From: Perna viridis
Taxonomy: Eukaryota
Length of the DNA: 64,000 bases
NCBI GenBank assembly: GCA_037379345.1
Contig: CM074514.1
Span: 45,012,001 to 45,076,000 of the forward strand
Reading direction: 5' to 3'
Shown here one piece after another: positions 42,001 to 64,000 of this stretch. Numbering within the stretch: position 1 is the first letter of the stretch; each line of letters starts with the position of its first letter. Below the pieces are notes generated by a model that was not told where the DNA came from, searched no databases, and was given only the letters and a program-made list of their open reading frames with translations. A program made the position numbers and the translations under genes.

Positions 42001-45000
42001 AGTTTGTAGCAATGATTCTGATGATGGCATTTGGAATGACCCTCCGACCCCATTAACTACAGAACTGTTTATCTTGGAAACTGAGCTTCTTTGAGCCAGA
42101 ACCGTCAGTAGTGGTGACTGTAAAATGACTGGTGGTTCGTCTGGTGCCTGGTTCTTTATGACCGATTGGTAAATAGTCTCTGCCACACTCAATACTTTCG
42201 ATGCCAATTCTTTCACCTGTCAGAATATCATCATTAATTTGACTACTTTAAACGTATTATTTTTCAAGGATTCCGTCAAGTGAGAATGTATGAAGGGAAG
42301 AATATTGGCGATTTTGAAAAACATAAAGGATTTTTCAAGGGATTACCAATTCCTTTTGCGGGCCCTATTTTCAGCGCTTGTTTTCACCAAAATGCGTGTC
42401 TAACTTTTACATCACATTACGTTTTTTTCCAAAATAAATATGTTTTAAAATTGTCAAAAGTATATTTTATCTATTTAAAAAAAAGCTTTAAACTTGATAC
42501 ATATAAAGCTAAATCGGTTAAATATACCACAGAAAATGTACAAAAACACTTCATGATATATAACCCAAAGCGCACCACAGTTTTCTTATCAACAGCTACG
42601 ACTGAGTCGGTAGTTATTCGACCGGATGCAGTTGTTTGGAGAGAGGGCGGCGTTATGGTTGTAGTTGTCTGTTCTATCCCATTTGATTCAAGCATATTCT
42701 GCTCTATAAAATTTGCAATCTCGTCACCAGTCGCTGCAAATACTACACTTCCTAATGTAGCAATTATATCTGAAATCATAACAATTATGAAGGAAGTGCA
42801 GCACTGTAGGTTGAAAAATTATAACAGTACAGGAGCCGGTTTGATAAAAAAACTCAAATTGAGATTTTTCTCAATCCGTCATCATCTCAAATTGTGACCA
42901 ATCTGACAGAATAAAATTGAAAATTTGAGTAAAAACTCAAGAATTAGACAAAAATCGCCTTTTTAAGTTTTTATTTAAACCCAGTACAGATCTGACTACA
43001 ACGACTTTTAGTATTCTAAAACAGTATTTAAAATCGCCGTTTTAAGTTTTTATTTAAACCCAGTACAGATCTGATTACAACGACGTTTAGTATTCTAAAA
43101 CAGTATTTAAAATCGCCGTTTTAAGTTTTTATTAAAACCCAGTACAGATCTGATTACAACGACTTTTATTCTAAAACAGTATTTCTATATCTAATAATAG
43201 TTTTGTTTATAAGTTTCTCACCCATGATAATATCGACTGGTCGGGTGGTTCAAGAAAACAGAGGGCGCTTGTCAAGTCGTTAAATTTATTCCGTGTTACT
43301 AGTTTGGATGATGACTAAGTTGTGCATTTACTTTAATTTTTTGTGTTTCATTTAATGTCGATATGTTGTCACTGTTTTCATCTACTTTATTTGCTTAAAT
43401 TCTGATTTTATTTATTTGTTTGTTTGTTGTTGTGTTTTTTTGCTTTGCTCTTAACTTTCTTATTTGTATATTTTTTTAACCGTGAGCTATGATATAGAGT
43501 ATAAAATGCCGATTTAAAGTGCCGATGCGTAAAGTGTTCCAACCTTCTGCTGCGCTGTACTTCTGACTTTGAGATTCTGTTCTCGATGTGTCAACCATGT
43601 CTTGAAAGTTATTTGCCATTTTCTCCATAGCATTGACTGCAACTGTCTGGAAGACATGGAATAATTTTATTGTATATCAGTTCATGGGTTGTCCATTAAA
43701 AATTGCAATCTCGAAGATGAACATTTATATTTCTGAACCTTTGTTATTTAATTGCCTAAGATAATTTTGAGCATAGACTTGTACAATATACACATGCATT
43801 ACTTGGAAACAAGGTAATACGGCTTAAACAGATTAGTTTTATACACTTGACATTTACCTGAGATTCTCCAGACAATTCAGAACTTTCATGTGTAATTACT
43901 CTGAATGCCATAGCGGTTTGCTGTAGAGAATCTAAAGTTGGTGTTTCTGTCTCTGCAGACAAAGTTTTGATGACAGCAGTCCGCAGCTACAAATAGAAAT
44001 TATTTAGTTTTCTAAATAGAATACCAAGTCGTAATAATATTTTTAAATAAATATTGTTCACGTGGTTGTGAATAAAACGTATAGGTTCACAACTTAAGCC
44101 TGGAGTAATATATTCTTCAGTTAAACGTGCAAAAAAGTATGAATTTTCTAAATCTACAATAATTTCACTAAGATATCAAGATTCAGAACAAACAAAACAA
44201 AATATATTAATTTTACCTCAACTCGAAGTTCTCTTGCAGCAGCTTCTTCCTCTTTACGAAGCTTTTCTGCTTCTTCAGGATCCAGTGTACTTCCAGGGTT
44301 TATGGAGGTATCTGGGGAATAAGTTGTTGTCAAGTTAAAAATAGAGCTACTTGTTGTTGGGTCAGTTTTAGATGGTGTTGTATTTGGAGCCGTTATCATT
44401 TGTAGAAGAGACGCCCTTGATATCCCGATCTGGACTGGCGAATAGTTGATAAGAGAAGCCACAGCTACTACTAGTTGTGTAGCTTCCTGTGCTTTACCAG
44501 AGGATAGAAGTGAGTCTAACTCATTGGAATCCCCGGATGTTAACGTCAAGAGGTCTGATACATCATCCACCACTGGTTCATTTACCTAAATATTAAAGAA
44601 GTATTTCTGAACTTTTATTAAAAATGCTGAATATTGTTTATGTTTCATATCTGATCGATATGAAAATGTATTATCAAACTACTATGTAATATACCCAGGA
44701 TTCAAAATTTTGTCAGATGTAAGAAATTTGCAGTATGTAGGAAAAAAACTCTTAATTTTTCCCAAAATACAGTTTGTGATAAAGACTAAAAACAAAACAA
44801 AAAATACAAACAAACATCCATGAAATTGTGTTTTCGACAATTTTCCTCTAGATTGAGAAGCACCGTTAGAAATATAACAATGTGTGAGTTAAGAAAAAAT
44901 ATCTTCTAGAAGCGCAATATTGTTCATATGGTGCTTTAAGGTAAAGAAAGTAAACCATGAACAGTTAACATTGTGTAGCTTATTAAGACACTTTTGTCAT

Positions 45001-48000
45001 GTAGTATTCGTAGCCCAACTGCCTTGAAAGACGCACTCTGCATTCACTGTTAAAGGAAAAGGTTTATAGTTAGAGCCTGACCCTGGCATGGTCTTATCTT
45101 TTGTGTTTGTATTTGTTTTAGAATGTTATTTCAAGAATTAAATTTCCTTCTCAATAAGCGATAAGTTTCTCATAAGACAGACCGTATTGTATTATATTCA
45201 CGTTTCCGTGAAACCACTCTAAACTGTGAAGTCAGCCTCATATCTTGACCTACACTTAGAAATCGATGGTAAAGGAAAACTATTGACCAAACTTTACGAC
45301 AAACGTGATGACTTTTCATTCAGAATTGTCAACTTTCCTTTTATGGCCGTTATCATGAACTCGTGGATCGTTATGGTGTATCCATCAGCACCATGAAAAC
45401 TGATTTACTCGACGGGTCATAGTTTTCCTTCCCTCGTTTGTCTACCCCGGACTTGACTTTTTATGAGCAACTCGGCGGGTGTTTCTAGAAAAGCAGAGGA
45501 CGATTACCCTACCGGTGCACCTGGTCCATTCTCCCAGTTTTTTTAGTGGAGTCGGAGTTGCTCATTTACTTTTGTTACTTTGTATGTATGATTTTAGTTA
45601 CTTTATGTTCTTTGTTGTGTATGTCTGTTTTCCCTGTCTGGTCTTTGTCCCTGGATTACATTCTTTTGATTACCACTATAACCTTGGTTCCCTTGATTAC
45701 TCTTAAACATATCTCTGGACTAACTGGCTTCCTGTGTAAACATATCTCTGGATAAATTGGTCTCCCGTGTAAACCAAACATCTTCTGAAATCCTATTATA
45801 TCGGTTTTCATGAGTTTTTAACTTAACAGAATAAATATTCCGTTTCATAGGGGAATCGGTTTAGACAGGTTTCAATGTATTAATGTGGTGTTTTCGAATC
45901 AGCTAAATATAATCGACTCGTGACGTATTTAAATGGCCTATTTATTGGGAGTACTCTTCTATGAACAAAACACCGCGAAAATTGAATTGAATTTAATTTT
46001 TATGGAAGCATAGAAATATTCGTAAATATAAGTGACTAAACTCATTATTTGTCAAAATGGTATGTATTTTTTAATTTTAGCAATCGTTTTGTTCTTACCT
46101 TCACTTTCAAATACGTTTCAACATATTCACCAATTGGATTTGAAATTCGAACCACAACGTCATGCATGAAGTCATACTCTTCTGGTCCAAGAGAAAATTT
46201 GCTCTTTGGTGTAAAGGGATCCTTCCCATAGTACAATAGTTGAGTATCATAAGATCCCCGAGGTCGTGACCAAAACCGGTAAAGTAAACCTCGCCCAAGA
46301 CTGTCCTCTTCTCCTGGATTTAACCAGCCGTTACATCGGATTTCAAATTCAGTTTCAAGCGCAAAACCTGAATTTTATCAAATTACGTCGTTGCAAAGCA
46401 AGTAATAAATAAACAAAAGTAAAGAATCAAAAACTATTTGACAAATTCTAAAAAGCTTTATTTACGTTGAGGACATACACAAATTCGATTACGCACGTAC
46501 ATCTGCAGTATAAGAAAAGTTGAACAATTCACTCAACTTTTACTTCCTGATTTAACAGAAGTTGAACTGTGAGGCGTTCGTTTTCTAAATTTTACTACTA
46601 CTAATACAAATCTCTTTCAAAACCTCGTCGAAAGATAAGACTTCAGAAAAGCGATAAAGACCAGTTGTTCAACCAATAACATATGCAATCGAAGACACGT
46701 TTTTGTAATAAGAAAGTTTTGGTCTGTTGAATCTGATACCTTATCAATGACCTGTACATTTAGAAATGGCTTATCAATAACAATTACAGAGATAATAAAT
46801 ATACCTGAGGGTGGATCAATCATGCATGTCCCGCCGTAAGGAGGAAGGTTAGTTATAAACTCATACTCTGTAAAACTTGGAGCATAACCATACACCTTTC
46901 CATCTACACGCATTCTGTAGATTCGACCTCCTATTAAGGAACGACTTTTTATCAATATTGATTGCGACTTGGTTCCTGAAAAAAGTCATAATGAATTTTT
47001 TGATAAAGAAATTTTGGAAATCTTTTCAATTATCGTATACCTGGTAAAATTTGGTACTTTGAAAAGTCGCCATTTATCTTGAGGGACTTCATATAAACAT
47101 GATTTGAAATAATATTTTTGTTTTTTATTTTAATGTTGCGGTTTCATTGGAACTGCGAAATTTCGCGAAAATTGTATTTGCCGCAACAAAATCCGGTTAT
47201 AAGGAATATTTTACTTTGACTAGCCTTTCATTTTTTATTCTCCTCTTACAACATAAGTAGTATATCTTGAACATAAAATGTGTGCAGTTTTATAATTTTA
47301 TCTATTGGTTGGTAGTTCAGTCAATTTACTTTACTTTTCTCACTCAAAAAAAAAATATAAAAAAATAACAGCAACAAAACGTTGTACTGGGTTTTAGCGG
47401 AATCAATGGTGCTGTAAGGTAATAATACTTTCCAAATAGGATATGTTTTATAAACAAACACCGTAAATAATCTTTTAATTCGTTCAAGTAATAATGTCAA
47501 TTAATGTCAAACGTACCTGTTGATGTATGAAGTTCAAGATTTTCAACCCTACTAAATTTGTCTGTGGTTTCGTTCCTTAAAGAGAGAACCCATGTATATT
47601 CTTCTTTGTCATAGTATGTACATTCCACACATCTAACCGACAGGGTAAAATCACTTGACGGGTTCATCTTTGATTTACAATTAACATGGCAGCTGTAAAA
47701 CAATAATTTTTTAATCAAGTGGACGTCTGTTTTTAGTTTTTTAGGGTGTGAACCACAATGCGTTGTCGAACTCAAAGAGCTGAAAAACACCTTGGTATAT
47801 CTGAACGATATGATACTAAGAAACTAAGTCATGATGTGTAAATAAAATATTTCTCATGCCTAAGATTTTGTCTTGCACTTTATTCTGAATATTTCTAAAA
47901 TTGTTTTCTGCAAAACTTTGTAATTATTATCATGAAGTCGAGTTTTTAAATTAATTTTGATACCAATTGACAAATATTCATTTGGCTAATCAGAAATAAG

Positions 48001-51000
48001 GAAACTTACTTTATAGTAAGAGTCGGAGGATCACCCTCAACTATATAGACTACTTGTCTATATGTACTGGATCTTGAATCTTTGATCACTTCAAGTTCGA
48101 ACACATTTTCTGATTGTGGCTCAAAGTAAAGAGTAGAAACCTGAAACAGTGGAGTATTCATAGGTAAAATACCAATGCCAGTCCCAAAACATCCATCCTG
48201 ACGTGTCATATTAATGTAAGTACTCCATTCTGGAATGTCGATGTCTGGCATTGTCGAGTCATACTTCTCTGATGCTTGTCTACAACGCCATATGAATAAC
48301 ATCCCTGTTTTGTTATTTCTATTGTCGATATCTGGATCGTAGGTATCGTCTGCAGCATTCATTATCAAAATATTGTTATAACCAACCACACGTGCATTCC
48401 CTCCATTTATTTTCACATGTAAGGGTGTTGGAGTAATATTCAAATATGTAAAATCTTCAGACGACAATCCATATATTTCGGTCATTGATACGTTAAGGCT
48501 AATCCTATAATGGCCATTTTCAAAAGAACGTGGTGGAAATAATAAGTTAAAATGATCAAGTTTAACATTATTCCTTAAAACATACTCCTGAAACGTATAG
48601 TCTTGGTATGTGTCTCCTTGTGAAATCTTATAAATATTCCATCGATAACTAACGTTTTGAGACACTTTACAATTGACTTCAGCATAACTTTGTAAGTTAA
48701 TCCATTCCGATTTTTGAATCTTTTCAGGTTCATCGATACTGAGACCACCACCAACGATGTGCACAACTGGATAGAAACAACTGATACCACTGATTATTGC
48801 GACACTCGATAAACTTTTCGATGAAATTTCATTACTACCAACTACGTTAACAGTATAGGTTGCATTTACTCGATACATGTGGGTATGAATCAAGGTTGGG
48901 GACAATTGCCAATTAATATACCTATAATTCATCGATTCAGCGGTTTTTTGACAATTATCCTCACCATAAATGGTCAGTGCTGACCCGTCACCAACATCCC
49001 AAATGTAACATGATGTCGTCCCTGGCTGACTAAGTTGTAGACTGAATGTGATCTTTTCAAAAGCGTTAGTTGGTCCATTATTTGTTAAAGTTGACATTAG
49101 TACAGTCTGGTACAAACGAATAACAAATGAATTAACAACAAAAGAAAGCTGATTACTTGCATTTACAATAACAGTATACTCCCCGTCTAGTTTGTACTTA
49201 TAAGAAATAGTTGCCTCAGCCGTCGTCAAAGTATCTCCGTTTCCGAAATCCCAAGCATAATTGATATTGTTACCACTTACAACAGTTGTATCAAATGTAA
49301 TATCCCTTTCAGTAGGGTATATGTTTGCATCGTCACCATAACCGTAACTTACATCTGAGCTATGGTCAGATAAATAGAAATACCTCACTACTTTTAACCC
49401 TTCAAGTCTTTCTAGAACCCAGATAGACTTAGCATCACTTAAAGACGACAAGGCATTATTGACATTAAAACGTATATTGTATTGTCCCTTCTGAACAAAC
49501 GTATGTGCCTTAGAAATTTGATGATTGTCTAACATTTTGTCAATCAGATTGCCTTGTTCCGAAATGCCATCGTTAAAATTAATCGTATAACTGACTTTGG
49601 TTCCACTTTCAATTGTAAACACAAAGTCTATAGTGCCACCGGTTGACACAAAGTCGTGATCTGCACTTATTGATATTCCTGATATTGTTTGTTGAAGCGA
49701 AGTCGAGGTTGAGAAGGTCAAAACACTTAACTTATTGGTACATTGAATGTCTATTTGAACTCCTCCAATATAGTTCTGGTTTACCCAAGTAGCACTGATA
49801 TATTCAATTTTTCCAATTGTCATTTGAGCAATATAAAAATTATGTATGCTAAGATTTGAAATTGTCGTGGAACAGTTTAGGTGCGATGGTGCATCGATTG
49901 AATTCAAGTACTGAATTTTCATTGGTATTTCACCAGGTGGATTTGAAATTACGTGAGCGGTCGACACTACCAGTCCCTGAATTAGGTTTTCGACAAATAT
50001 TTCCTTATCCAGAAATACAATTTGAGAAGAAATGCTGTTTGAAGCTATTATACTTATATTGTATATTCCAACATTAGTAACTCGTAATGAATGAAAATGC
50101 GTAGTTGGACCGCGGAAGCTGTTAGCAATAGACGTGTTTACGAAATCGATGTTATTCAATTTGATATTCAACAAAAGGTTGGAACCATTTTCTGTCTGAA
50201 TATTTAAAGTGACCTCATCGTTAGGTTTAACTGCATAATTGCTTGCCCAAACATCTAAGCCAGTTATTGTCTCTTCTGTCATAACTTCTCCCGCTATATA
50301 CTGATTACTCACAAAATTTGAAATATTTACCTTTATCTCAAATGTACCTACTGGATAGTAATGATACAGTGTTAACCAGCTAGTGTCATTCATAGTTGGA
50401 AGAAATTTATACAAGGACGTCCCATCACCGAATTGCATATCAATATGTACATTGCTATAATTATGCACTGCTAGTATATCAAACTTAATATTACCAGAAT
50501 AGTTATGATCAAGGACAGTTTTCTTCAAGCTGCAATTTCCAATAACGCCCTGAACTTTGATATCAGTGTCTGTGACAATATAACTTATGTCGTTTGAAGC
50601 ATTTACAGTTATTGTATAGTTGCCTTCGTTGTTGTATCTGTAAAACACAACAAAGAATAAATGCAAGACAAAACTCTGGTGTTGTGTGCAATTTCAAATG
50701 ATAATGAGCAATTACTTAATTAGTTTAAGCAGGTGCATTATATCGAACCGCAGCAATTTGTACGTTTGAAGGCAATGAATCTTTATTTAACGTTTTCATG
50801 TTGGTTCCATATAATTTTAAAAAAATGAAATAAATCATATTTCCTGGTAACTGTTTCTCAGCCCCATTTTCCCCTGTTGAACCCTAGAAAATGTGAAATA
50901 ATCGAATATCATTACAGCACTAGTTTACTTGTCATACTTAAAATGTATTTATTGGAACATACATGTGTGAAAACGTCACAGGTAATATAAACGACAACAT

Positions 51001-54000
51001 GTGTGGATCATTGACAGTCTCCACTGACCCATCTCCGTAATCGATAGTGTAGGTTACATGTGAGCCTGTCTGTAGGGCAATGGTTAACTCAACTGTTTCT
51101 AATTCTTTGTAGAAAGTCTTATCAGTCTGTAAAGTGGCAATACCGACAGGATCCATATTTTCAGCATCAATCGCTGTTAAAAATGCAAAAATGTATACCA
51201 TTTTTAAGTAATAAATTTTTTTGAAACTTGAAATATTATGAGTAAGCTCTGAAAAAATACCCCTCACTTCAAGTGAATTATATCATATTTGATCCTTAAG
51301 TTGGATTATTACCCTTCCCTGAACTGACATTAGTTATCTTTCTTCATGAAAATCTCTATATGATGACAATTTGTTCTATATATTTAATCAAATTTCATTG
51401 GGTGGTTAAAGTAGAGAAAAAAAACTAAATTACACTACGTAAAAGGTGAAGTATGCAGTCATTATTGATATTATTTTATTTCATTAAAAATATTCTTTTC
51501 TCATAATTTTCATAATGTTTTTTTTTAAATTACCTGTACAAGAACGGCCAGGACGTTTTGGATTCAATGAAATGTCGAGATAGCCACTCATACAAGTACA
51601 GTTGTAATAACCCTCCAAATTAGTGCATTCCGCTTTAACATTGCAGTCATTCCATAGTGAATTCTCACATTCATTTATATCTAAAAAATGAAACGTTTTG
51701 AATATTTACATAGATTCGGTTCCATTTATTTACAAATAGCATTAAAGTTTCATATTATATATTGCATTACGATAATTCGTTTAATGTATAATGTGGTATA
51801 TAAACAAACCGTTAAAAGTATACTTTACATTTGTTTCCATTTAATCACGGGAACTCACAAGTCTTTCAACCTTTCCCCACTGACCAGTAATCATTTTTGA
51901 AAATAAATCAACATTTTTTGTATGTACAAATCATTTTGTTTACCAGAGTTCAAAACAAGGGGAGTAATTAAGTTAACTATTCAATTAAAATGGGCAATAA
52001 CCCAATTTAGAAAAAAAAATGTTGAATGGTGAAAAAGCATTGTTAAAGACGCAATTTCTGATACAATACGAAAGAATAACACTATATTTGGTAAGAGCTT
52101 TACTAAGTCTGCTTTTCTTGTTTTAAGCTGTGTATACAGCATTTCAATGTGCTTTTAAGTCGTTACATGAAGAACTTAATTGTATTAACTGCGTTTTGAC
52201 CAATTACTCATCAAGGCTGTATCATAACGGATGATGATAATTTGACCAATTACTCATCAAGGCTATATCATAACGGACGATGATAATTTGACCAATTACT
52301 CATCAAGGCTATATCATAACAAAAGATGATAATTTGCAGTTTAGTATTAAATTTTATGAGAAAAAGCTTCACAAGTCCGATTTATTGAGAATTCATCAAC
52401 CATTTAGTACCAACGAATTCTTTTTTAGTATTGAAGATTAAAAAATATACGTATGTTTTCTTATTGTCAGCAGGAGTACTTTTGATTAGTAAAATATGAA
52501 GAAAAAAACATGTCATGAACAGTAATAAGATCTGATTACCATAGGTATGTATGCCTACCTTGAACTGTAAGATTATCGGCAGACAACTCAATACCATACT
52601 GTAGAAATGTTTCTTCGTTTTCCATCATAACATTATACAAGTCTATAGCCGTGGCGTTTGTTGACAGATTATAATAGAGGTAAAGGTTGACTACAATACT
52701 ACCAGGAGATATTGTGTGGATGGAGAGACCATTGTACGTATCAGCGAGGTACGATTTATCCATTGTAACGTGAAGCTAAAGAAGAAAGAAGAACTAATAG
52801 TTATTTTAAAATATGCCAAGAGGTTCCATTAAAAAGGGACAAAAATGCATTCGATGATCATATAAACATTAAAATTAGAGGTCAATGATATAAATGAAGT
52901 TCTGTCGTATTTGTATTGTTCAAAGTCTTTTTAAAATATCTAGCTGAAAACAAGTCCCATAAAAGCTAGGTAAATGCAGTAAACTACATATTAAATTGAA
53001 CATAATCATGATCGTAAATTCAGTGCAGTTACTATAAAAACATACTGAATATCGTAATTGGTTCAGTAGATTACTAAATTCGTTTGAGTCCTCATTCTGG
53101 TAATCTGAGGTAAACACAGCTTCACTGTCATTAAGCTTCAATATCTTTATAGACATTTCAAATTTTACTGCATCTACAATTGATCAGAAATATTGATATG
53201 ATATACTGCATTCACTATCGGCAGTACTAGTATTGTGTGACTTAAAATAAGTTGATGCTTTGATCATTATACAGTACTATGTAATTTTTCAAGTTGACAA
53301 GTTTTATATAAAAGTCATCTATCTTCTTAACGCATTTAACAAGACTCAGTATAATGTAAATCTCCACCGGGGGCTTATTTTGGTGTATATTAGCTATCTA
53401 AAAAAGCCACAATCGGCTTCAGTGCACCAATTACCATACAACTAAATGGGGAAGACTTAAACTTTTCGCATACCCTTTTTACGCAAAATCGCTATAGTTT
53501 ACATCCGCCAAAATAACCTGCAATACGATATTAAGTTACCTTCGCAGGTAAAACCGTCCTTTTGGTAAAAGCCATCATGACATACACAGTAATATCTGCC
53601 ATCTGTGTTGCTACAATTAGAGTATTGTGAACAGGGACTACTGGAACATTCATTTATATCTGTAAATACAACGATAATCCAACAACAAGATCGTAACCAC
53701 AGCAAGTTTTATTTCTAAAATAAACATTATAGAAGAATAAAATACATGCATCAATGCTTCAAGCTTAAATAAAAAAAAAATGAAAAAAATAACAAGGTAA
53801 ATATTTACCTTTGCACTCATTGCTGACTTTTTCGAATCCCGTCAGGCAAATGCAAGTGTAACTTCCAACTGTATTCAAACATTGAGCATTGGTCATACAA
53901 GGAGAAGATAAACATTCGTTTATATCTATAAAAAAATAGCAGTATAAACAACATTGTATGTGTTTATGTGATGAAAAGCAACATTACACCAATTTTTAAC

Positions 54001-57000
54001 TTTACTGTAGATGTTACTGCAAATTTTTTTTAATCATACATTTTACATTTAAGCCAGCCTGAAAAACTTAAGGTACAATTAAATGTAAATACAAATCGTT
54101 TTAAGGAAAAACTAAAAAGGTATACCACGTTTATATGTCAATAATTTATCACAAATGATGTTTTAAATTTTACACTGTCAATTCTTACCTTCGCATTTAT
54201 TATTCAGCATTTGAAAGCCTTCATTACACGTGCACTTATAGCTGCCATCTGTATTTGTACATATGGATTTTGACGGGCACAAACCATACAAACATTCATT
54301 TGTGTCTGCGAATATAATAAATTATGTTTGTTTTACCTGTTTGTGGACAGGAAAAATACAAGAGATATGATAATTTTATACGATAAAATCCGAAAACACA
54401 ATCATATATACTGCAAGAGTAATCAAGGGAAACAAGGTTATAGCGGTAATCAAAAGAATGTAATCCAGGGACAAAGACCTGACATGGAAAAGAGACATAC
54501 TCAACAGAGAACATAAAGTAACTAAAATCATACATACAAAGTAACAAAAGGAAATGAGCAACTCGGACTCCACTAAAAACTGAGAGCATGGACCAGGTGC
54601 ACCGGTAGGGTAAGCGTCTTCTGCTTTTCTGAAACACCCACCGAGTTGCTCATAAAACGTCAAGTCCGGTTAGACGAAAGAGGAAAGGAAAACTGACACG
54701 TTGAACAAATCAGTTTGTATGGCGCAAATGGATACACCGTAACGATTCATGAGTTCATGATGACGACCATAAAACTTTTGTAGTGATGACTTCAATCTTG
54801 TAGCAACATAACCCTGCTCCAGAAGCCTATTTGTTAGAATTCTAGCGCGGTACAAAAAGTCTGCATAGTCTCGGCAAGCTCTGGCATAACGTATGAGTTG
54901 TGATATGAACACTCCATACACAGGCGCTGAAGGAATGTTGCCACAGATGAAAGGAAAGTTGACAATTTTGAATGAAAAGTCATCATGTTTGTCGTAAAGT
55001 TTGGTCACTAGTTTTTCTTTACCATCGATTTCTAAGTGTAGGTCATGATATGAGGCTGACTTCACAGTGTCTGTAGTATCCATTATCTCAAGTTCTTTGG
55101 GGTAGATGCAATATATCAAATCCCCAAAATTAGGATTGTGCAAATTTTGTTATGCTGTACTCTTATCAAAATCATTAGAATCAAAGACTAATGAGGGTTC
55201 AAGGGGTGGGTGGGTAGCCTCCTTTGGCTCGAAAAGTTTGGTTGATTATTAGTATATTGAAAAAAATACATTGATTTTTATTTTGGAGCCGCCCCTTCAA
55301 GGCCAGTCAGTTTTTTCGGAATGTTTTAACCTGCCAATCCTTTAGACAATAAAATTATTATAGGCAAGTAAATTAAGGCTAACAACAAATTACCGAACAC
55401 TAGTCCAATTCATAATCAAGTCAAGTCCAAAATAAATCTGGCAAAATAGATATTACACCACCGGGGCTGCTGGTACCCCTATAGTCCTGAATTGGTGCAG
55501 GAACTTCAAACGAAATGGTGAGTTAAATCTAGATTTTACAGCGCACTAAAGATCATTATGATTTAATTTATTTTTATATAGTATTGATCTATATTTAAAT
55601 TAAGGATTTCTTAAATTAAAAGCAACTGTGTTAACAATGCGATCTACTTGAAAAAAAGAGTACATCATTCTATGCCGTAAGGACAATCTGAGATTTCTTT
55701 TGAATTCTGAACTGAGTTAAAATAGTATCACAAAAGTATACCTATACAGTCCGACCCAGTAAATGTATATCCTGTCCAGCAACTACACTTGTAGCTACCA
55801 TCTGTATTTGTACAGTTTGAATGTACTGGGCAGGAAGAACCAGATATACATTCATCTACATCTAAAGGAAAAAAATATTTATTAGAAAATTTTACATTAA
55901 TATTGAATTGTTCACCAATATTGAAATCAGATTTGCGTTTTTGAGTTAAAGATAAAATAAAATAAATGTGTGTCTTTCTTCTTGTTCCTCGGTCAACAAA
56001 ATGTATTTTCCCTAGTATCTTACCTTTGCAACTGTTGTTACTCAATTCAAAACCATCACGACATAAACAACTGTAAGATCCCTTAGAATTATGACAGTCA
56101 GAATTCACAGGACAAGGACTGTTGTAGCATTCATTGATGTCTGAAAGGCATAAAAGGCGTATGTCATCATACAATTGTTTTATTTACTGATGTTCCATAA
56201 TGGGAGTCCATAGGCAGTCGACATCTAATCCTGTGCATTGACTGTCTTATAAAACCCATATTGGGTATGACAATACAACCAATACACCCTATGGGTAATT
56301 AAATTCCTTAAAGATAAACGTAGAAAACCATGCCTCATCATTTAAACAAACCCGAAAGATAACATAGTTAAGTTTTACGAAAAAAAGTGACTTGTTCATT
56401 TTCAAATAGATACAGCTTGTTGATATATGTGTTTTATAAGATATATCAAGAATCTATCAATGCTAAGAGTGTACGACCGAGATCTTTAACGAGGACCAGC
56501 AGACTTTGAGAACATGGAAATCTTATATGGTAATGTTTGAAATTTTTTTTAAAGATTTAGTGTGTCACAAACTGGCATACTTTTGGTGAGACAAATGACA
56601 AGTGACGAAAAATATTTATACCCTTTCCTACAAAATGAGAAAATGTTACCTTCACATACACCTCCTGCTTTGACAAATCCTTCATTACAGATACAGGAGT
56701 AGCTACCTTCGGTGTTATTACAGAAGGAATCTTCAGGACATACGCTTTCAATACATTCATCAACATCTAAAACATTATACAATATTATAATATCTAAGTG
56801 AAGCAAAATTATGGTATCGAAGATGGAAATTCATGGGCAAAGCAAACCGCTCCAAAAGACATTAACTAAAACAAATACTAACAATAAAAAAGACAACAAA
56901 AATAAGTAAATCTCTCTTTAAAAATCAGGCGACATGTGTATAAGGTGTGGCACATGAAGAAAAAAATGCAGATAATTTATTTCAACATCCAATTATTTTT

Positions 57001-60000
57001 ACCTCATAACATCCATAATTTACCATCAAAGTGTATGAACAATATATCATTTTAAGATATTGACAGGTCAAATTTACTTTACATGCACTACATTATAATG
57101 GCGGGAAAATTTTACATGAACCGCATCAAAAGATCCAAAGATGAAGTGAACGATCAATGCATGAAAATAGTCTCCAACTTTTCAATATTTTTTTTAATTT
57201 TTAACGATGCAAAACATTCTGTACATTCGTTAAGTTAAAGGATATTATTAAACCTTTAAATCATTGTTACATTTATAAACATTTCGCTGTTACGCCAGGT
57301 AGGAGTGTTTTGCATATATATGCTTCAAAGAGTAATCAAGGGAACCAATGTTATAGCGGTAATCAAAAGAATGTAATCAAGGTACAAAGACCAGATATGG
57401 AAAACAGACATACACAACAAAGAACATAAAGTAACTAAAATCATACATACAAAGTAACAAAAGCAAATGAACAACTCGGACTCCACTTAAAAACTGGTAG
57501 CATGGACCAGGTGCATCGGTGGGGTAAGCGTCCTCTGCTTTTCTAGAAACACCCGCCGAGTTGCTCATAAAAAATCAAGTCCGGGGTAGACGAAAGAGGA
57601 AAGGAAAACTATGACACGTTGAACAAATCAGTTTTCAATACTGACGATACATTTAGTTTAATGCTTAAGCCGGAAGGGTATATTCTATCGAATATGAAGC
57701 AAATATTCTGATATGAAGTCAATTATATTTCAAAATTCAATTATATTTAAGGTAACAAGAAAACATTAGAACGTGTACGAATCATGCACGCTTGAGAGTA
57801 ATCAATGGAACCAAGATTCTAGCGGAAATCAAACGAATGTAATCCAGGGACAAAGACCAGACATGAAAAACAGACACATCAAAGAGCATTATGCAAATAA
57901 AACAATACATACAAAGTAACAAAAGCAAATGAGCTAAAAATTGGGAGCATGGACCAGATGCACAGGTAGGGTCATTTATCATTGTTCGTTAAGAATATAT
58001 ACTTACCACGACATTGGTTGTTAATTAAAGTGTATCCTTGTTGACAAACACAGTAAAAACCACCATCAATGTTGATGCATGTAGAATGTAAACCACAAGT
58101 CGACTTATCACTACATTCATCAATATCTATAACAAAAAATAAATCTAGAGAAATGAATTAAATTCATTTACATTTTAAGGTAAAGTTCAATCATTTAATA
58201 TATATCTTATTATATAAAATATATGTTTGGTAAATATTTAAGCTCGATGTATCATATATAACAACAACATATAAGACATTCAGAACTGTCAATTGAATAA
58301 TACCAAGGCATTCAATGTGTGTTTACATATCAATTAATCCGTACAAATGTTTCAAATTGTAAAGAAATGTTTTTAAAAAATTATGACAAATATTATTACC
58401 CAAACCATACAATGTATTTTGTTTGGTTTAAAATGAGTACAGAGATTAGCAGTCGCCCATATTTTAAAATGAGCACAGAGATTAGCAGTCATACTTATCT
58501 TAAAATAAGCACAGAGATAAGCAGTCATCTACATCTATATTTTAATTGATGAAGTACTGTGATGTCCTCACCTAAGCATAATCCAGCGTGTTCATAGAAT
58601 CCATTCAAACATGTACAAGTGAAACTGCCAATGGTGTTGTTACAGATGGAATGACTTGAACATGCAAAATCTAAACACTCGTTAACATCTAAAATCAAAT
58701 AATTATACATTAGATATAACTTTTTTTAAACTTAAATAAAGTAGATTATGAACTTTGCTTTTGGTATCAATGCCTCTCGTTAGGTACATCTAAATAAAAT
58801 CAAACATTAAAACAAGTCACCACTGCTGCTTTCATACTTATCCTTGTCATATAAAGAGTAATGAAATAATATGACATGCGAACTGTAAATTTATATTTCT
58901 TACCTTCACAGAATCCGTCTCCATTTTTATCATAGCCAGTATTACACTTGCATTTATAGCTCCCAACAGTGTTTGCACAACTGGAATCATTTACACATAT
59001 TCCACTGGTTAGGCATTCGTCGATATCTACAAAAATATCAGATAAAAGGAAATATAAACATTAACAAATATTCTGAATTAAAATAAAAAAAAAAACATAT
59101 ATCTTTAAAAATCGTTCGATTTATTGTATTGATATCTAGAAAAATATCACGTGATAATAAAGAAGAGTATTCACATAAGATAATTAATAAGTTAATCTCT
59201 AATCTCTAATCAATAGTACTAGAACAAAATACATTCGAATAAGATAATAAAAAACTCATTTTACCTTTGCACAAACTCGACTCTTCATAAAATCCTTCTC
59301 GACATTGGCAGGTATAACTTCCAACTGTATTGTTACAGATGGAATAGGGCGGACATGGGTATTCGTCACATTCGTCAATGTCTACAAAAATGTTATAATG
59401 TAAAAATACCAAATAATATTCAAATGGGTAAATTGAAAATTGAAATAAGTAAGCTGCTTATTTTGAGCTGCAAAGACCAACTTTAAATAAAATTTCAAAA
59501 GCAGATTTTTTTCTAATTTAAACGCTTCTCTTCTGCATTTTACTGATGAACAGTTGATCATTTTATACGTATTTCAGAATCCGTACAGTTGTATTTTAAA
59601 CATGGAATCCAATATATAAACTTGATAATAACTTACCACTGCATTCGTTTTGTTCCATGATATATCCTTGATGACAATTACATTTATAGCCTGATAATGA
59701 GTTTGTACAATTACTGTTTACTGGGCATGGCGCTGACAAGCAATGGTCAACTAAAAAAGAGACATAATGATATAATAAATATTAAGTTATAGTTGGTATT
59801 ACAAAACAAAAGCTTGGACTAAGAAACCCATAAGATGTCTATATCTTATATATATTGATTAAGCAGTTTTCCACAAGTAAAGCAATCTAAGATTTTTGTA
59901 GTAATTTAAAATCATTACATCTTTGTATATGGAAGAGATTGTCTATTTTGTTAATCATCATTAATTTATGATTCATTTTGAAATATCATTGAGCTGATGA

Positions 60001-63000
60001 ATACGTTTCTTCTTATTCATCAGGTACTTCGCAAAATAATTTATAAATCAAGTAGGTAAGTGTTCATATAAAAAAACACATTAAAGTCGTGTTTTGACTT
60101 GGTTTACACTTGGTTAGCTTAGACAATTAATTTTAAAAAGTGATATATCAATGATGAAAAATTGATATCTTTGCTATTCATATAAATAAATAGAAATAAA
60201 AACCTTGTTCTGTCGTCGGTAGATCGGTTGTTGTAATGTCGGTTGCAATATCAACTTCAACAGTAGTTCCTTCTTTAAGGCCTAAAACAAATCATTTAAT
60301 AAAATAAAACGAAGCAGGAATAGTATTTACTGTCTCACTTAAGTACAGAAGTCAAAACAGATCATTAAACTTTAACTTTAAAGGTTGCTTCCATCAAATT
60401 AAGTATTCATAAACTCAACATATGCTTGCAAATACACGAAAAAAAATACCAGTATACACACACAAAATATATATACTTACCAATAAATGATGTAAACTCA
60501 TCCTTTATAACATATCCTGGGTTGTCCATAGAGTAATATGCCTGATTCAGTTTATTCTTCATTGTTACAGCATCATATACCCCATCAATTACAGTTACTT
60601 CAAACATAACAACAACACTACCGGGTCTAAAAACCAAACGTATACAAGTGATATCTCAATAATTGCATTTAGTTATTTATGATTTTTAAGAGTTTTGATG
60701 TCTACGTTTTGTAAACATTTCAGGAATGTTTCTAATTTTGAACAGGTCATACGGAATAACCTTGTTGGTGGAAGTTAACACTCATTGCGGTTTATATGTG
60801 TAAACTGCCGCAAAGCAGGTGCACTGTATCATACAACCTATTAAAAATAGAAATATTCCTTATGATGATTTTTTCAAGATTCAATAGAATTAATTTGTAA
60901 TCAAGACATTGTTTATTTTTACATTATTTGAAGTACAGAGTGGTCCAGATGACTTTAAAATCAATGTCATACCAGGTCATATAAAGAAATTTGGTTGGCT
61001 AAAAAGGAGACAGCCAATCAGAAAGCTTGCTACAAATTAAATCAGATTATATAAATATGATGAGAGCAAATTCAGACACCTTTTTGTTCAATGGAAAAAA
61101 ATGAGCAATAGTGATAATTCTTTTACAAATTTTGATCATAAATACATCACTATATCGCTGTATAAAAAAGGCATTACTATTCAAATGTTTTAACAAATGT
61201 TTGAGTTACACGACAGTAAAGAATGAATAGGCACACTAAAGGCCAATCAGTTTTTACAATTTTTCAGTTGATTGCATTTAATTTTAAACAAGAGAAAATA
61301 TTTAGATTTTCAAATATACTGTGAGTACTTACTGGAAGCCAACGATGACAATGTCATCTATTGATAAATCCGATTTGGCTAAAATGCTCAGGAGCTGCAA
61401 GAAGAATACATTACGAGATAAAATTACATTCATTTGGTACTTGAATGTAAATATTTATTTATGTTTGTTTCTATACATGTTACTGTGTAAAGAAAGCGGT
61501 CTTTAATGTGAAGTATTTTACGCAACAAGAAAAAATATGTATTTACCGTCCCATTTTATCTAAATTGCGAGAGAATCACTTATTTGATTAGTTAAAATAA
61601 ATAGAAAATATTGTTTCACGATTTAAAGCCTTAAACATCGAATGTAAAGAACAAAATTATAACAGAGTGCATTATCGAAATGAATGGGTTAGCGTACTCA
61701 CAAACTGTTTCATCTGGGCTGCCATATTCTGAAAGGCCTGTGATTGGGGATCGTTCAAATCGTCGTTCCAGTTTTGATCCGTGACAATTTGACCCTGATA
61801 ATCAGTTGTTGAATGATGTGATGCTTTAGTTGATATACCATTTCCCTGTCCAGAATCATCGGTCACAAATACGTCATTTTTCTTGGTTATTTGATCTTGA
61901 TTTTCATTCCCACTATCTATAGTGGTAATTTCGTTTATGCCAAGAGAGGCATAAAACGTAGTTGATTCTCCTATTAAATGTTCAGTACTGCCTTGTTGTT
62001 TGGTGAACTTCGTCGTAATCATATTATTTTCTGTTGAAAAGAAATCATCATCATTAGGTAGATGGGTACTTGAAATCTTCATGGTAGTAAATTTATCTCT
62101 TGTCAATTGGTCGCTTGTATGTTCCACATATTTATTGCTTGACATTTCTTGTGGAGGTTTCGTTGTTTCAGTTTTTATAGTTGTGATACTTGTATCGACA
62201 TTGTGTGTAGGATTAGTCGTTAGATAGTCGGTATTTAAGTAGGGGAATGCAGTTGATACATCATTCCTATCATTTTGATTATCTAAGGAACTTGTTGTTA
62301 TTGCTCTTATATTCGTAGTTGTTTCTTCTATAGAACTTGTATTTATTTCTCCTATGGAACTTGTAGTTGTTTTTCCTATGGAACTTGTAGATGTTTCTCT
62401 TACGGGACTTGAAGCTGTTTCTCCTATGGAACTGGTGGTTGTTTCTGCTACGATACTCGTAATTATTTCTCCTATAGAACTGGCAGTTGTTTCTGCTACG
62501 GAATTAGTAGGTGTTTCTCCTATGGAACTGGCAGTTGTTTCTGCTAGGGAATTAGTAGGTGTTTCTCCTATGGAACTGGCAGTTGTTTCTCCTACGGAAC
62601 TGGTCGAAGTTTCTCTTACATAATTTGAAGTTGTTTCTCCTTTAGAACTTGTAGCTGTTTCTCCTATGGAACTTGTAGTTGTTTCTCCTATGAAATTTAT
62701 TGTCGTTGTTTCATTCATGGAACTTGTACTGGTTTCTTCTATGATATTTGTAAATACATCTATGGAACTTGTTTCTCCTATAGAAGTTTTGCCAGTTAAC
62801 TCCACCGAAGATGTTCTTAGAGTACTTGTTATTCCTGTTTCACTTGTTGTTTTGGTTATAGAGCTGGGTGTTGATGCGTCAAGTTCTGTCGTTTTAAAAG
62901 GTGTTTGAGAACCACTCGAACTTAAAGTAACGTCTGTTTCTTTTTCAGAAGTGGAATCGCTAGTCAACAAGGTCGACTGGCTTGAAAAAGAGGCTGTGAC

Positions 63001-64000
63001 AGATTGTGTATTGTTTGCGTCATAAATATGAGCCTTCGGTGTACCAATAGAAGAAGAAATAGAACTTAAATTAGTGGAAATTCCAGATGCATCTCCTGTG
63101 AGTGAGATTCGATTGGTTGTTATTTCCTTTTCTGTAAAGGTATTGTCAGTCATCATTGACAAATTTTCAGTTTTCTTAGTCTTAGTGTAGTCGGTTGAAG
63201 AAAAAACTGATGAGTCAATATCAGACGTTGTCGTACTCATAGTGTCGGATGTTTTGGAGTTAACTGAGTCGGAACTCATGTTGGTAGTAGATAAAACACC
63301 TGCGGTCACAGAACCAGTAGCTATCGCATGATATGTTCTGCTAGATATGTTTTCTGGAATGGGTGAAACCGTCCTTGTTAATGCATTATTTGTGCTTATA
63401 TCCGTCGCCGATTCCGTTACTCTCTTTGATAAAGTTGCAATTTCAGTACTAGATGTTTGCTTGTCTAGTAACGTATTTGAGTTTAAGTCCGTAATATTTC
63501 CCGAATCTGTTGTAATAGTGTTTTCTTCTGTCGACTTAATTGTAATTGTACTCATGATAGTTGACGAACGTACATTATCAGACACTAAATTACTGTTCAA
63601 GTCATTGTCACTAGCAGATGGTTTAAATGATGAAACATAATGTTTTGTTGTTCCATCGATATCTGACGACACTTCTGTATCACCGGAAGTACTTCTACTT
63701 AATTCCCGATTTACGGAGGTCATTTCAGTTGCATATTTAGAAAATGTTGTATAACCATCATTGCTCACAGTATCATCTACACCAGAAGACATAATATTAT
63801 TTGCTGCCGTAGACGTTTCAGTTGTTTCAGATTTAGCTGCTGGAGTGCTGCGAAAAGACATTGTTTTCTCTACAGCAACGGTGCTTTTATCCTCTGTTAT
63901 ATCAGAAGTAACTTTAGTTCTATCACCAACATGTTCATATGTAGTTTTATCGTCTTCAGTACTATCATCGTATGAGGTTGAAGCAACTTCGATCGAGAAA
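30043..64000 (-). CDS. Polycystin-1-like gene B with mucin/SEA/EGF ectodomain, 5'-partial, 40 exons in window, >4300 aa
   Basis: Exons (high to low): >64000-61702, 61394-61333, 60626-60481, 60281-60204, 59750-59637, 59381-59265, 59026-58904, 58688-58572, 58126-58007, 56766-56650, 56140-56024, 55861-55742, 54305-54189, 53925-53809, 53659-53540, 53173-53046, 52775-52559, 51680-51534, 51173-50963, 50637-48010, 47692-47517, 46975-46805, 46367-46099, 44585-44217, 43986-43858, 43646-43544, 42769-42576, 42216-41971, 41635-41152, 39984-39830, 39202-38969, 38021-37848, 37607-37447, 37019-36209, 35821-35689, 34331-34102, 33854-33680, 33395-32712, 32028-31468, 30314-30043. Junctions are GT-AG, the summed length keeps frame, and the frame stays open to the window edge. 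Motifs: [32 protein letters not shown] / YNPNVNMF. Confidence 0.87.
30992..31432. mobile_element. 441-bp element bounded by 33-bp inverted repeats, enclosing the tRNA-like unit
   Basis: aatgtgacgagactattcgctacactgctccat (30992-31024) vs atggagcagtgtagcgaatagagtcgtcacatt (31400-31432), 30/33 complementary. Confidence 0.7.
31121..31221 (-). ncRNA. tRNA-derived (SINE-head-like) Pol III unit, not a canonical tRNA
   Basis: Minus strand agcctagcTGGTCGAGTGGTctagggcgctggac...acGAGTTCGAGTCCcgcggaggg shows an A box and a B box, with an over-long central region. Confidence 0.65.
38072..38841 (+). mobile_element. Penelope-like element copy, antisense in an intron of gene B
   Basis: [19 protein letters not shown]...[10 protein letters not shown], frameshifted; starts about 50 nt from a PLAT exon acceptor. 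Confidence 0.85.
38969..39984 (-). other. Gene B GPS motif and TM1
   Basis: [18 protein letters not shown]|[17 protein letters not shown]^[16 protein letters not shown], a canonical four-Cys GPS. Confidence 0.88.
40190..40405 (+). mobile_element. Highly decayed 3' UTR of the same Penelope-like family
   Basis: gacgggagttttctagaaaa...ggacgcttatc...gtgca followed by a T-rich tract. Confidence 0.45.
42951..43184. repeat. Minisatellite, 79-bp unit x 3
   Basis: aaaatcgcc...cccagtacagatctga recurs at about 42951, 43030 and 43109. Confidence 0.9.
45204..45879. mobile_element. MITE-like element with imperfect TIRs, host of the PLE copy
   Basis: Left end ttccgtgaaaccactctaaac vs reverse complement of the right end tacattgaaacctgtctaaac; internal taaacatatctctgga repeats. 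Confidence 0.5.
45223..45703 (+). mobile_element. Penelope-like copy with an internal deletion, inserted inside a MITE-like element
   Basis: Jumps from aactttcctt directly to tatggccgttatcatg; TAAAC on both flanks (45220-45224 and 45704-45708). Confidence 0.8.
46099..51173 (-). other. Gene B PKD repeats and full REJ module
   Basis: [22 protein letters not shown] (PKD); [19 protein letters not shown]...FALETEF (REJ). Confidence 0.85.
52195..52336. repeat. Minisatellite, 46-bp unit x 3
   Basis: tttgaccaattactcatcaaggct recurs at 52195, 52241 and 52287. Confidence 0.9.
52559..53173 (-). other. Gene B SEA domain 2 with GSIVV motif (52689-52703)
   Basis: [16 protein letters not shown]...LSIHTISPG^[10 protein letters not shown]; followed by a 12th EGF exon at 51534-51680. 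Confidence 0.75.
54416..55139 (-). mobile_element. Penelope-like element copy
   Basis: ORF 54670-55143 is the RT C-terminus ending ...TDLFNVS; the full 3' UTR follows. Confidence 0.85.
57329..57637 (-). mobile_element. Penelope-like element 3' UTR copy
   Basis: Reverse complement of about 6622-6927. Confidence 0.85.
57795..57971 (-). mobile_element. Penelope-like element short 3' fragment
   Basis: agagtaatcaatggaaccaagattctagcggaa...gagcatggaccagatgcac. Confidence 0.75.
58428..58535. repeat. Degenerate minisatellite, about 36-bp unit x 3
   Basis: aaaatgag.acagagattagcagtc appears three times. Confidence 0.75.
60481..61810 (-). other. Gene B SEA domain 1 with GSVVV motif (60608-60622)
   Basis: Spliced sequence ...[10 protein letters not shown]^[10 protein letters not shown] matches the SEA autoproteolysis loop. 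Confidence 0.75.
61702..64000 (-). other. Gene B mucin-like Ser/Thr-rich stalk exon, ending in the start of SEA domain 1
   Basis: More than 760 open codons dominated by S/T/E, ending ...[26 protein letters not shown] (SEA N-terminal pattern). Confidence 0.8.
62320..62790 (-). repeat. Coding tandem repeat, 24-nt / 8-aa unit (ETTTSSIG-like), about 19 degenerate copies
   Basis: Recurring gtttctcctatggaact on the + strand; translation [34 protein letters not shown]... Confidence 0.85.

Follow-up and report, generated by a model that had tools for sequence, protein, structure and literature searches.

Does the minus strand of this stretch of Perna viridis DNA, a 64,000-nucleotide piece of contig CM074514.1 that we call the window, carry a membrane mucin beside a polycystin, or one gene in which the two are joined? 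Read from 63999 downward, its frames give in succession a serine/threonine-rich (S/T-rich) region, pieces of a SEA domain, 11 EGF modules, pieces of a second SEA domain, a twelfth EGF, PKD, REJ, GPS, PLAT and a channel that ends at about 30046. Our best explanation, to which we give a probability of roughly 0.8 and which includes a deduced model of cleavage and force, is one very large minus-strand gene. It would encode a polycystin-1-family protein (PKD1-like or REJ-type) whose N-terminal ectodomain is extended by a membrane-mucin cassette. The full domain order would be S/T stalk, SEA1 (G|SVVV), 11 EGF, SEA2 (G|SIVV), EGF12, PKD, REJ, GAIN/GPS (HL|T), a first transmembrane segment (TM1), PLAT and 10 more transmembrane (TM) segments that include a PKD2-like pore. 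The DNA of the window is that of an invertebrate, AT-rich (GC content 0.28-0.40) and free of N runs; it comes from an assembly of 723 Mb in 46 contigs. All features below lie on its minus strand unless a plus is given.

Open frames were taken from stop to stop on the minus strand, and Pfam was searched exon by exon. GT-AG sites and compatible phases were found for 18 of the 18 ectodomain exons, each acceptor having a polypyrimidine-AG. The initial annotation had proposed in-frame, phase-compatible exons leading from the S/T stalk through SEA, 11 EGF, SEA and EGF to the polycystin, and all of them lie where it had placed them. Splicing was followed with transcript contigs from four runs aligned to positions 48000-53999; these are low-depth contigs (depth 2-7), not single reads, and the run type was taken as RNA. 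The rows of run X14 were identical to those of X1 and were not counted as independent. The intron gaps of the contigs end in CT..AC, or GT..AG when read along the minus strand, so that the runs contain spliced RNA.

Five joints were recovered in this way: 53659|53809 between EGF10 and EGF11 (run X2), 53173|53540 between EGF11 and the first SEA2 exon (SEA2a), 51680|52559 between the second SEA2 exon (SEA2b) and EGF12, 51173|51534 between EGF12 and the first PKD exon, and 50637|50963 between that exon and the large PKD/REJ exon. For the step from EGF9 to EGF10, contigs ending at 53927 run on identical to the sequence from 54191 onward, over 219 letters in X1, and the alignment of one contig breaks off exactly at 53046, the predicted donor of SEA2a. 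The joint between EGF12 and PKD was seen in two studies (X1 of P1, X3 of P2), which argues for one gene and not for a mucin beside a polycystin. It falls at the exact coordinates of the single gene across 51173 that had been claimed at the outset. Thus, the exons from EGF9 to REJ are spliced into one transcript.

The same arrangement was found in other molluscs. With the PKD/REJ exon as query, a full HMMER search retrieved 638 relatives at E <= 1e-10, and EGF motifs were scored by regular expression among the best 150 of these 638, where at least two motifs were present only in a mollusc orthogroup. The EGF-bearing relatives comprise Argopecten irradians XP_069125477.1 ('polycystin-1-like protein 2'), the unionid Potamilus streckersoni KAK3612418.1, a Mya arenaria protein ('AGRE1-like'), a Haliotis cracherodii protein ('polycystin family receptor for egg jelly-like') and Haliotis rufescens XP_048238653.1 (6,593 amino acids, aa). 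Word-based searches added Ylistrum, Mizuhopecten, Pecten, Haliotis asinina, Gigantopelta aegis and Octopus vulgaris. The layout EGF array, SEA, EGF, PKD, REJ, GPS, PLAT, PKD_channel was observed in Argopecten, Ylistrum, Mizuhopecten, Potamilus, Mya, the three Haliotis, Gigantopelta and Octopus. In the orthologues scanned with Pfam the order was EGF_CA (4-11 copies), SEA, PKD, REJ, GPS, PLAT, Polycystin_dom, PKD_channel, and the SEA matches of Ylistrum, Gigantopelta and Octopus exceeded the gathering score, with 37.1, 54.6 and 109.4 bits respectively, the last over three stretches. By tblastn, the Ylistrum protein and the window run collinearly between EGF12 and the pore. Nine orthologous models share the domain order, and the layout is, as judged from these predicted proteins, conserved in bivalves, gastropods and a cephalopod. 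No such layout was obtained outside molluscs; the non-mollusc matches of the word-based search carry EGF or SEA but no polycystin families.

The SEA domains are each split between exons, and we built two profiles for them, a proximal one from six orthologue SEAs and a distal one from five. SEA2 consists of two exons joined in phase 0: SEA2a (53046..53173) matches the proximal profile at positions 4-54 (E 3e-7) and, by tblastn (E 9e-6), the Ylistrum SEA with the Pfam score of 37.1 bits, and SEA2b (52559..52775, ...LSIHTISPG|SIVV) matches positions 52-119 (E 4e-12). The candidate cleavage of SEA2, G|S, lies between 52701 and 52700. SEA2b is single copy in the genome, and the proximal profile had no match in 114 kb besides SEA2a and SEA2b. 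The Gly-Ser pair was invariant in every proximal SEA examined, the motifs being PGSIVV, PGSIII, DGSIII, AGSLVI, SGSLLV, NGSVVV and EGSVIV.

SEA1 is made of three pieces. Its first third (beta1-alpha1) is formed by the last 45 or so codons of the S/T-rich exon M5, down to 61702; it gives a partial Pfam SEA match (E 2.3e-4, profile 9-41) and aligns with the distal SEA of abalone. Its last exon (60481..60626, (Q)PG|SVVVMFEV...EFTSFI) matches the distal profile at positions 60-111 (E 1.4e-10) and the distal SEAs of H. asinina, Gigantopelta and Octopus by tblastn (E 5e-7 to 3e-4), the candidate G|S cleavage lying between 60620 and 60619. Between the two we placed a micro-exon of 62 nucleotides (61333..61394; acceptor TTCTTCTTGCAG, donor GTAAGT, phases 0 to 2), which ends with the CA of a split Gln codon. 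It fits the strong phase-0 donor that closes M5 (61702), the acceptor at 60626, which is in phase 2, and the segment missing relative to orthologues. Its own match to the distal profile is weak (positions 36-61, E 2.2) and stands between the two flanking exon matches, so that the three exons are in register at 10-41, 36-61 and 60-111. The spliced domain reads ...IVIVGF-Q-PG|SVVV, and the FQPG^SVVV site of the initial annotation is thereby restored by the micro-exon; its ISPG^SIVV and GPS HL^T sites were also recovered. A two-exon SEA1 reading FRPGSVVV in the unspliced frame was rejected, the distal SEAs of H. asinina, Gigantopelta and Octopus being about 20 residues longer at this place. A search for transcript-derived proteins crossing the SEA1 junctions gave only the window's own unspliced open reading frame (ORF), and Pfam had no match on the small ORF at 60181-60291. 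In H. rufescens XP_048238653.1, around residues 2340-2365, the distal SEA lacks a segment of about 25 residues found in H. asinina (…LQFLQQIFGNTNLAPYIDSIVITGFR…); this RefSeq model probably skips the counterpart of the micro-exon.

The G|S[V/I]VV motif of the self-cleaving SEA subclass, which belongs to the beta2-beta3 turn, is thus present in both SEA1 and SEA2. It is the motif of strain-driven autoproteolysis in MUC1, MUC3, MUC12 and MUC17, whose fragments stay associated and unfold under force (PMC13643018). SEA and GAIN have been described as the sole domains that are cleaved and yet held together until force separates them (PMC6954182). Cleavage at the GPS into N- and C-terminal fragments is a hallmark of the polycystin-1 family and is needed for the function of polycystin-1 and LOV-1 (PMC9829181). 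By analogy with the SEA of these mucins and with the GAIN of polycystin-1 and adhesion G protein-coupled receptors, both SEA domains and the GPS would cleave themselves while folding and stay associated non-covalently, and the protein would then consist of three or four fragments linked in a chain. Drag exerted on the glycosylated stalk by mucus, flow or a bound surface would be carried along the stiff rod of calcium-binding EGF (cbEGF) modules and would separate the joints in turn. The stalk would be shed and, finally, the GAIN-proximal stalk that would control the channel or receptor core would be exposed or relieved. We put forward only tentatively a 'serial-fuse' polycystin in molluscs, with a micrometre-long glycosylated tether, three or four pre-cleaved force-separable joints (SEA0, a probable third SEA discussed below, SEA1, SEA2 and GAIN) and a channel core, in which graded drag would produce stepwise irreversible shedding and channel activation. 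The serial rupture points and the mucus or flow sensing proposed in the initial annotation would have the same footing in analogy.

The same gene and architecture could also function otherwise. The SEA domains may be stable spacers, uncleaved or cleaved without consequence, in an ectodomain that serves for adhesion or ligand binding, for instance as a receptor on sperm or cilia that recognises a glycan or an egg coat, in the manner of the sea urchin REJ proteins, and not as a mechanical fuse. Some relatives are indeed auto-named 'receptor for egg jelly-like', the ectodomains of the sea urchin PKD1 family are lectin-type gamete receptors (PMC1934368) and cbEGF arrays are classic protein-binding modules. 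The residues that follow Gly-Ser differ among orthologues (SIII, SLVI, SLLV), and a predicted SEA site of MUC16 was not the one at which cleavage really occurs (PMC4456727). However, Gly-Ser itself does not vary in the proximal SEAs of three mollusc classes, the GSVVV and GSIVV of the window are identical to the motifs of MUC1 and MUC3/17 (PMC13643018), and a stalk on the micrometre scale is better suited to drag or to acting as a barrier than to specific binding. We consider a spacer role possible, and on balance unlikely.

The tether of the proposed fuse includes exon M5, whose 3' part occupies 61702..64000 of the window as an open frame of 775 aa. The frame continues to about C4:45078329, to reach 1,559 aa in all, and has an S+T fraction of 0.38, a proline fraction of 0.02 and no Cys; its donor, TTT|GTGAGT at 61702, is in phase 0. 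Tandem Repeats Finder detected within it an array of 17.8 copies of a 24-nucleotide unit (62315..62743), corresponding to an 8-aa repeat of the type SSIGETTT. In the surveyed 30 kb beyond the window, four further S/T-rich, Cys-free minus-strand frames of 331, 505, 775 and 2,248 aa were found (C4:45076001-45091560). The stalk frames have S+T of 0.37-0.38, 2-5% proline and compatible phase-1 sites, and two of the upstream ones share the ending ...RSD[HY][AV]SSDAG|GT, which suggests exon duplication inside the stalk. The stalk is at least 1,559 aa long and probably about 5,400 aa in total. The S/T stalk of more than 700 aa in the initial annotation is present, its exon being far larger and preceded by four more, and it is mucin-like by S+T content alone. 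For comparison, the first 3,200 residues of the H. rufescens model have S+T of 0.34-0.61 by composition and motifs.

Upstream of the entire S/T region we identified a probable third SEA, SEA0, in two pieces that match the distal profile and the N-terminal SEA of Octopus. One piece, ...RRKRQAEVTVLPGHRGRLKIVEGVQWHDDLLDINSDAFLQLEEDIIIM (C4:45098995-45099633), has E 3e-5, and the other, YSQG|SIEVFFVLKL (C4:45091991-45092194), has E 0.004. SEA0 is preceded by a furin-type RRKR and has QG|SIEV as candidate cleavage site; the candidate self-cleavage sites may thus be four if it is counted. Pfam, run piece by piece, did not match the SEA0 pieces, and a regular-expression search of the upstream region for a middle (micro-)exon found none.

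These upstream S/T exons and SEA-like pieces could instead form a separate mucin gene, with the start of the polycystin gene inside the 1,559-aa exon or a little ahead of it. The transcript contigs cover positions 48000-53999 only, SEA0 has weak matches, no middle exon was found for it and its halves are seven kb apart. The upstream frames nevertheless lie on the same strand and share the composition of M5, their phase-1 donors and acceptors fit, the ...SSDAG|GT ending is repeated, and in the Octopus, Gigantopelta and H. asinina models, too, an S/T-rich region stands between a SEA and the EGF array. We regard a separate upstream gene as rather improbable, and keep to a stalk belonging to the polycystin.

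Several points weigh against our single-gene explanation and the cleavage model it contains. The contigs are shallow and only presumed to be RNA, and the gene is not spanned by any one molecule; three joints, SEA2a to SEA2b, 61702|61394 and 61333|60626, have no contig cover. Taken singly, the SEA exons of the window fall below the Pfam cut-off, and only the first third of SEA1 matches at all (E 2.3e-4). The cleavage motif alone does not guarantee autoproteolysis, as MUC16 illustrates (PMC4456727). The stalk is proline-poor (2-5%) as well as acidic, and its dense O-glycosylation is an assumption. Finally, neither the 5' end nor a signal peptide or transcription start was found in the 30 kb upstream. 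That a membrane mucin and a polycystin are two neighbouring genes, connected solely through read-through, chimeric transcripts or an assembly artefact, is nonetheless very hard to sustain: the contigs are indeed shallow, and immediately ahead of the acceptor of the PKD exon there is an ATG with a hydrophobic stretch that might pass for a signal peptide, but this stretch is the acceptor's polypyrimidine tract, the EGF12-PKD joint is GT-AG with matching phase in two studies, no TM or stop exon lies between the EGF and PKD exons, and nine independently predicted orthologues from three classes carry the junction in frame.

The polypyrimidine tract in question (51173-51282, minus strand) translates as a start codon followed by a signal-peptide mimic. 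It could lead gene predictors to start a separate polycystin gene at this place.

All twelve EGF exons are 114-147 nucleotides long, divisible by 3, in phase 1-1 and bounded by GT-AG. The 11 EGF modules between SEA1 and SEA2 were recognised as D-x-D/N-E-C...C-x-C units, and 10 of them are calcium-binding. The exception is EGF1 (59637..59750), which starts with DHCLSAPC, lacks the calcium-binding consensus and matches Pfam EGF_CA (E 5e-5) and EGF_MSP1_1 (E 4e-6). The others were detected with Pfam EGF_CA: EGF2 at 59265..59381 (E 4.5e-9), EGF3 at 58904..59026 (E 1.6e-9), EGF4 at 58572..58688 (E 5.1e-9), EGF5 at 58007..58126 (E 2.6e-10) and EGF6 at 56650..56766 (E 5.9e-9). EGF7 (56024..56140) and EGF8 (55742..55861) were recovered as two stretches of one match with a joint E of 2.3e-18. 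EGF9 (54189..54305, E 1.1e-9), EGF10 (53809..53925, E 4e-10) and EGF11 (53540..53659, E 2.4e-8) have in addition the contig continuation or joints described above, as does the calcium-binding EGF12 (51534..51680, DINECEN..., E 1.6e-9), which is joined on both sides. Interspersed repeat copies were observed in introns at 54299-55149, 57328-57988, 45606-45719 and 38763-38873 (minus strand), one of them being a 157-aa ORF, together with recurring short frames; they are likely transposon remnants that enlarge the EGF8-EGF9 and EGF5-EGF6 introns.

The polycystin part begins with the first PKD-repeat exon (50963..51173, Pfam PKD E 8.5e-5), followed by a large exon of 895 aa (48009..50637) that contains about five PKD repeats (E 6.5e-40) and the start of REJ (E 9e-34). 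Three further REJ exons, bounded as open frames within 46048..47823, match positions 209-415 of the REJ profile and are collinear by tblastn with the scallop orthologue P0156; the REJ (PF02010) profile is covered collinearly from 4 to 415 across the four exons. The exons of the GAIN region (38900..44585), assigned by collinear tblastn to P0156 and hydropathy, end in a GPS (PF01825, E 9.2e-6) that reads CLCNHL|TSFG at 39149-39157, with TM1 in the same exon as a hydrophobic segment 30 residues on. PLAT (PF01477, E 4.2e-7) follows in two exons at 37413..38036, with 60-70% identity to P0156 by tblastn, and its place after GPS and TM1 in the exon order is that of the first cytoplasmic loop.

The membrane core (31460..37042) comprises an exon with TM2-5, the polycystin (TOP) domain (Polycystin_dom E 2.6e-29), PKD_channel (E 6.3e-34) and the pore, and a probable last coding exon at 30046..30372 supplies the C-terminal tail as an open frame. 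Transmembrane segments were counted by crude hydropathy; the window exons yielded 10 strong ones and the collinear P0156 yielded 11, the latter being the number given for the core in the initial annotation. On ten core exon pieces, which leave out some of the exons after the GPS, the secretin-like seven-transmembrane (7TM) family 7tm_2 had no match at E <= 0.1. The pore exon aligns to polycystin-2 in the PDB (E 4.8e-29) with the filter LGD changed to LGK. At this position of the pore loop (31460-32077) Lys is found here, Glu (LGE) in scallops and His (LGH) in abalone, the flanking pore helix being conserved. The change suggests a non-canonical subunit pairing with a PKD2-like protein: because the filter aspartate is replaced, the core would probably be the odd subunit of such a heteromer.

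A second PKD1-like gene was observed on the plus strand at 17381-28675 (probably from near 12000), with GPS, PLAT, a TM core and a PKD channel. It has 33-61% identity to the scallop orthologue over high-scoring segment pairs and lies tail to tail with the gene described here, the gene ends being about 1.4 kb apart.

Compared with the polycystin-1 family (PKD1, PKD1L1-3 and PKDREJ; sea urchin SpREJ1-10; C. elegans LOV-1), the window gene has the same PKD, REJ, GAIN/GPS with HL|T, TM1-PLAT, polycystin domain and C-terminal PKD channel, but catalogued members are without SEA, cbEGF array or kilo-residue S/T stalk, whereas the window gene has all three. LOV-1 is described as having a mucin-like N-terminus, although a full-text search for 'LOV-1' with 'mucin-like' returned no paper. 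The modules catalogued for PKD1-family ectodomains of human and sea urchin are LRR, WSC, C-type lectin and SUEL, together with a single EGF in SpREJ1 and a Ser-rich stretch in SpREJ9 (PMC1934368). Neither SEA nor an EGF array is in this catalogue; the initial annotation had stated that vertebrate PKD1-family proteins lack the combination.

SEA-type mucins (MUC1; MUC3A/B, MUC12, MUC17) resemble it in their huge S/T domain encoded in very large exons, in a SEA with G|S[V/I]VV and, for MUC17, in EGF on both sides of the SEA (PMC13643018). They end in a single TM and a short tail, whereas in the window cassette EGF12 is spliced straight to the PKD exon, followed by REJ, GAIN and a predicted 11 TM; relative to them the window gene also has a proline-poor stalk (2-5%), two (perhaps three) SEA and a rod of 11 EGF between. 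ADGRE receptors (EMR/CD97) share an EGF array and a mucin-like stalk before GAIN, the Mya orthologue bearing the automatic name 'AGRE1-like', and ADGRF1 and ADGRF5 share a GSVVV-type SEA ahead of GAIN, that is, two non-covalent joints in series (PMC6954182). These likenesses to MUC1-type SEA, ADGRE and ADGRF, drawn in the initial annotation, are apt (PMC6954182, PMC13643018). Both receptor groups carry a 7TM secretin-like domain after GAIN where the window gene has PLAT and a polycystin channel core, and adhesion receptors are not known to join an EGF array, two SEA and a giant mucin in one chain as the window gene does. The negative regulatory region of Notch is alike in a long EGF array leading to a SEA-like, pre-cleaved, force-sensitive module by the membrane, the SEA-like domain of Notch2 having been compared with that of MUC1 (PMC6954182). 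Notch, however, is cleaved by furin and not by itself, has LNR modules and a single TM, and no sequence relationship to the window gene was found.

In the literature searched no paper was found that describes SEA together with a polycystin, and a full-text search for 'REJ domain' with 'SEA domain' was empty. The four papers containing both 'polycystin' and 'SEA domain' concern, by their titles, fibrocystin/PKHD1 or adhesion GPCRs, and a paper on oyster polycystin (PMC12677090) has nothing on these domains. The initial annotation had left open whether the architecture was undescribed. This seems to hold for the family and its logic, but the sequences themselves are already public, the layout being present, unremarked, in RefSeq models. 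We take the ectodomain as a new and conserved form within the polycystin-1 family.

A coherent family is concealed by the automatic names, among them 'AGRE1-like', 'polycystin-1-like protein 2' and 'uncharacterized'. In it a channel-type polycystin bears a giant tether and, between the two, a series of two or three SEA and a GAIN, a design kept across three mollusc classes. The EGF-SEA-EGF cassette of the MUC3/12/17 type is not confined to single-pass mucins. Force sensing and channel control by polycystin-1 ectodomains are a long-standing question in the biology of polycystic kidney disease, for which a naturally occurring protein whose textbook rupture motifs have known places is a tractable test system. 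If the stepwise rupture proposed here were true, it would represent a mechanosensing principle uniting the logic of membrane mucins, of Notch and adhesion GPCRs and of TRP channels in one polypeptide.

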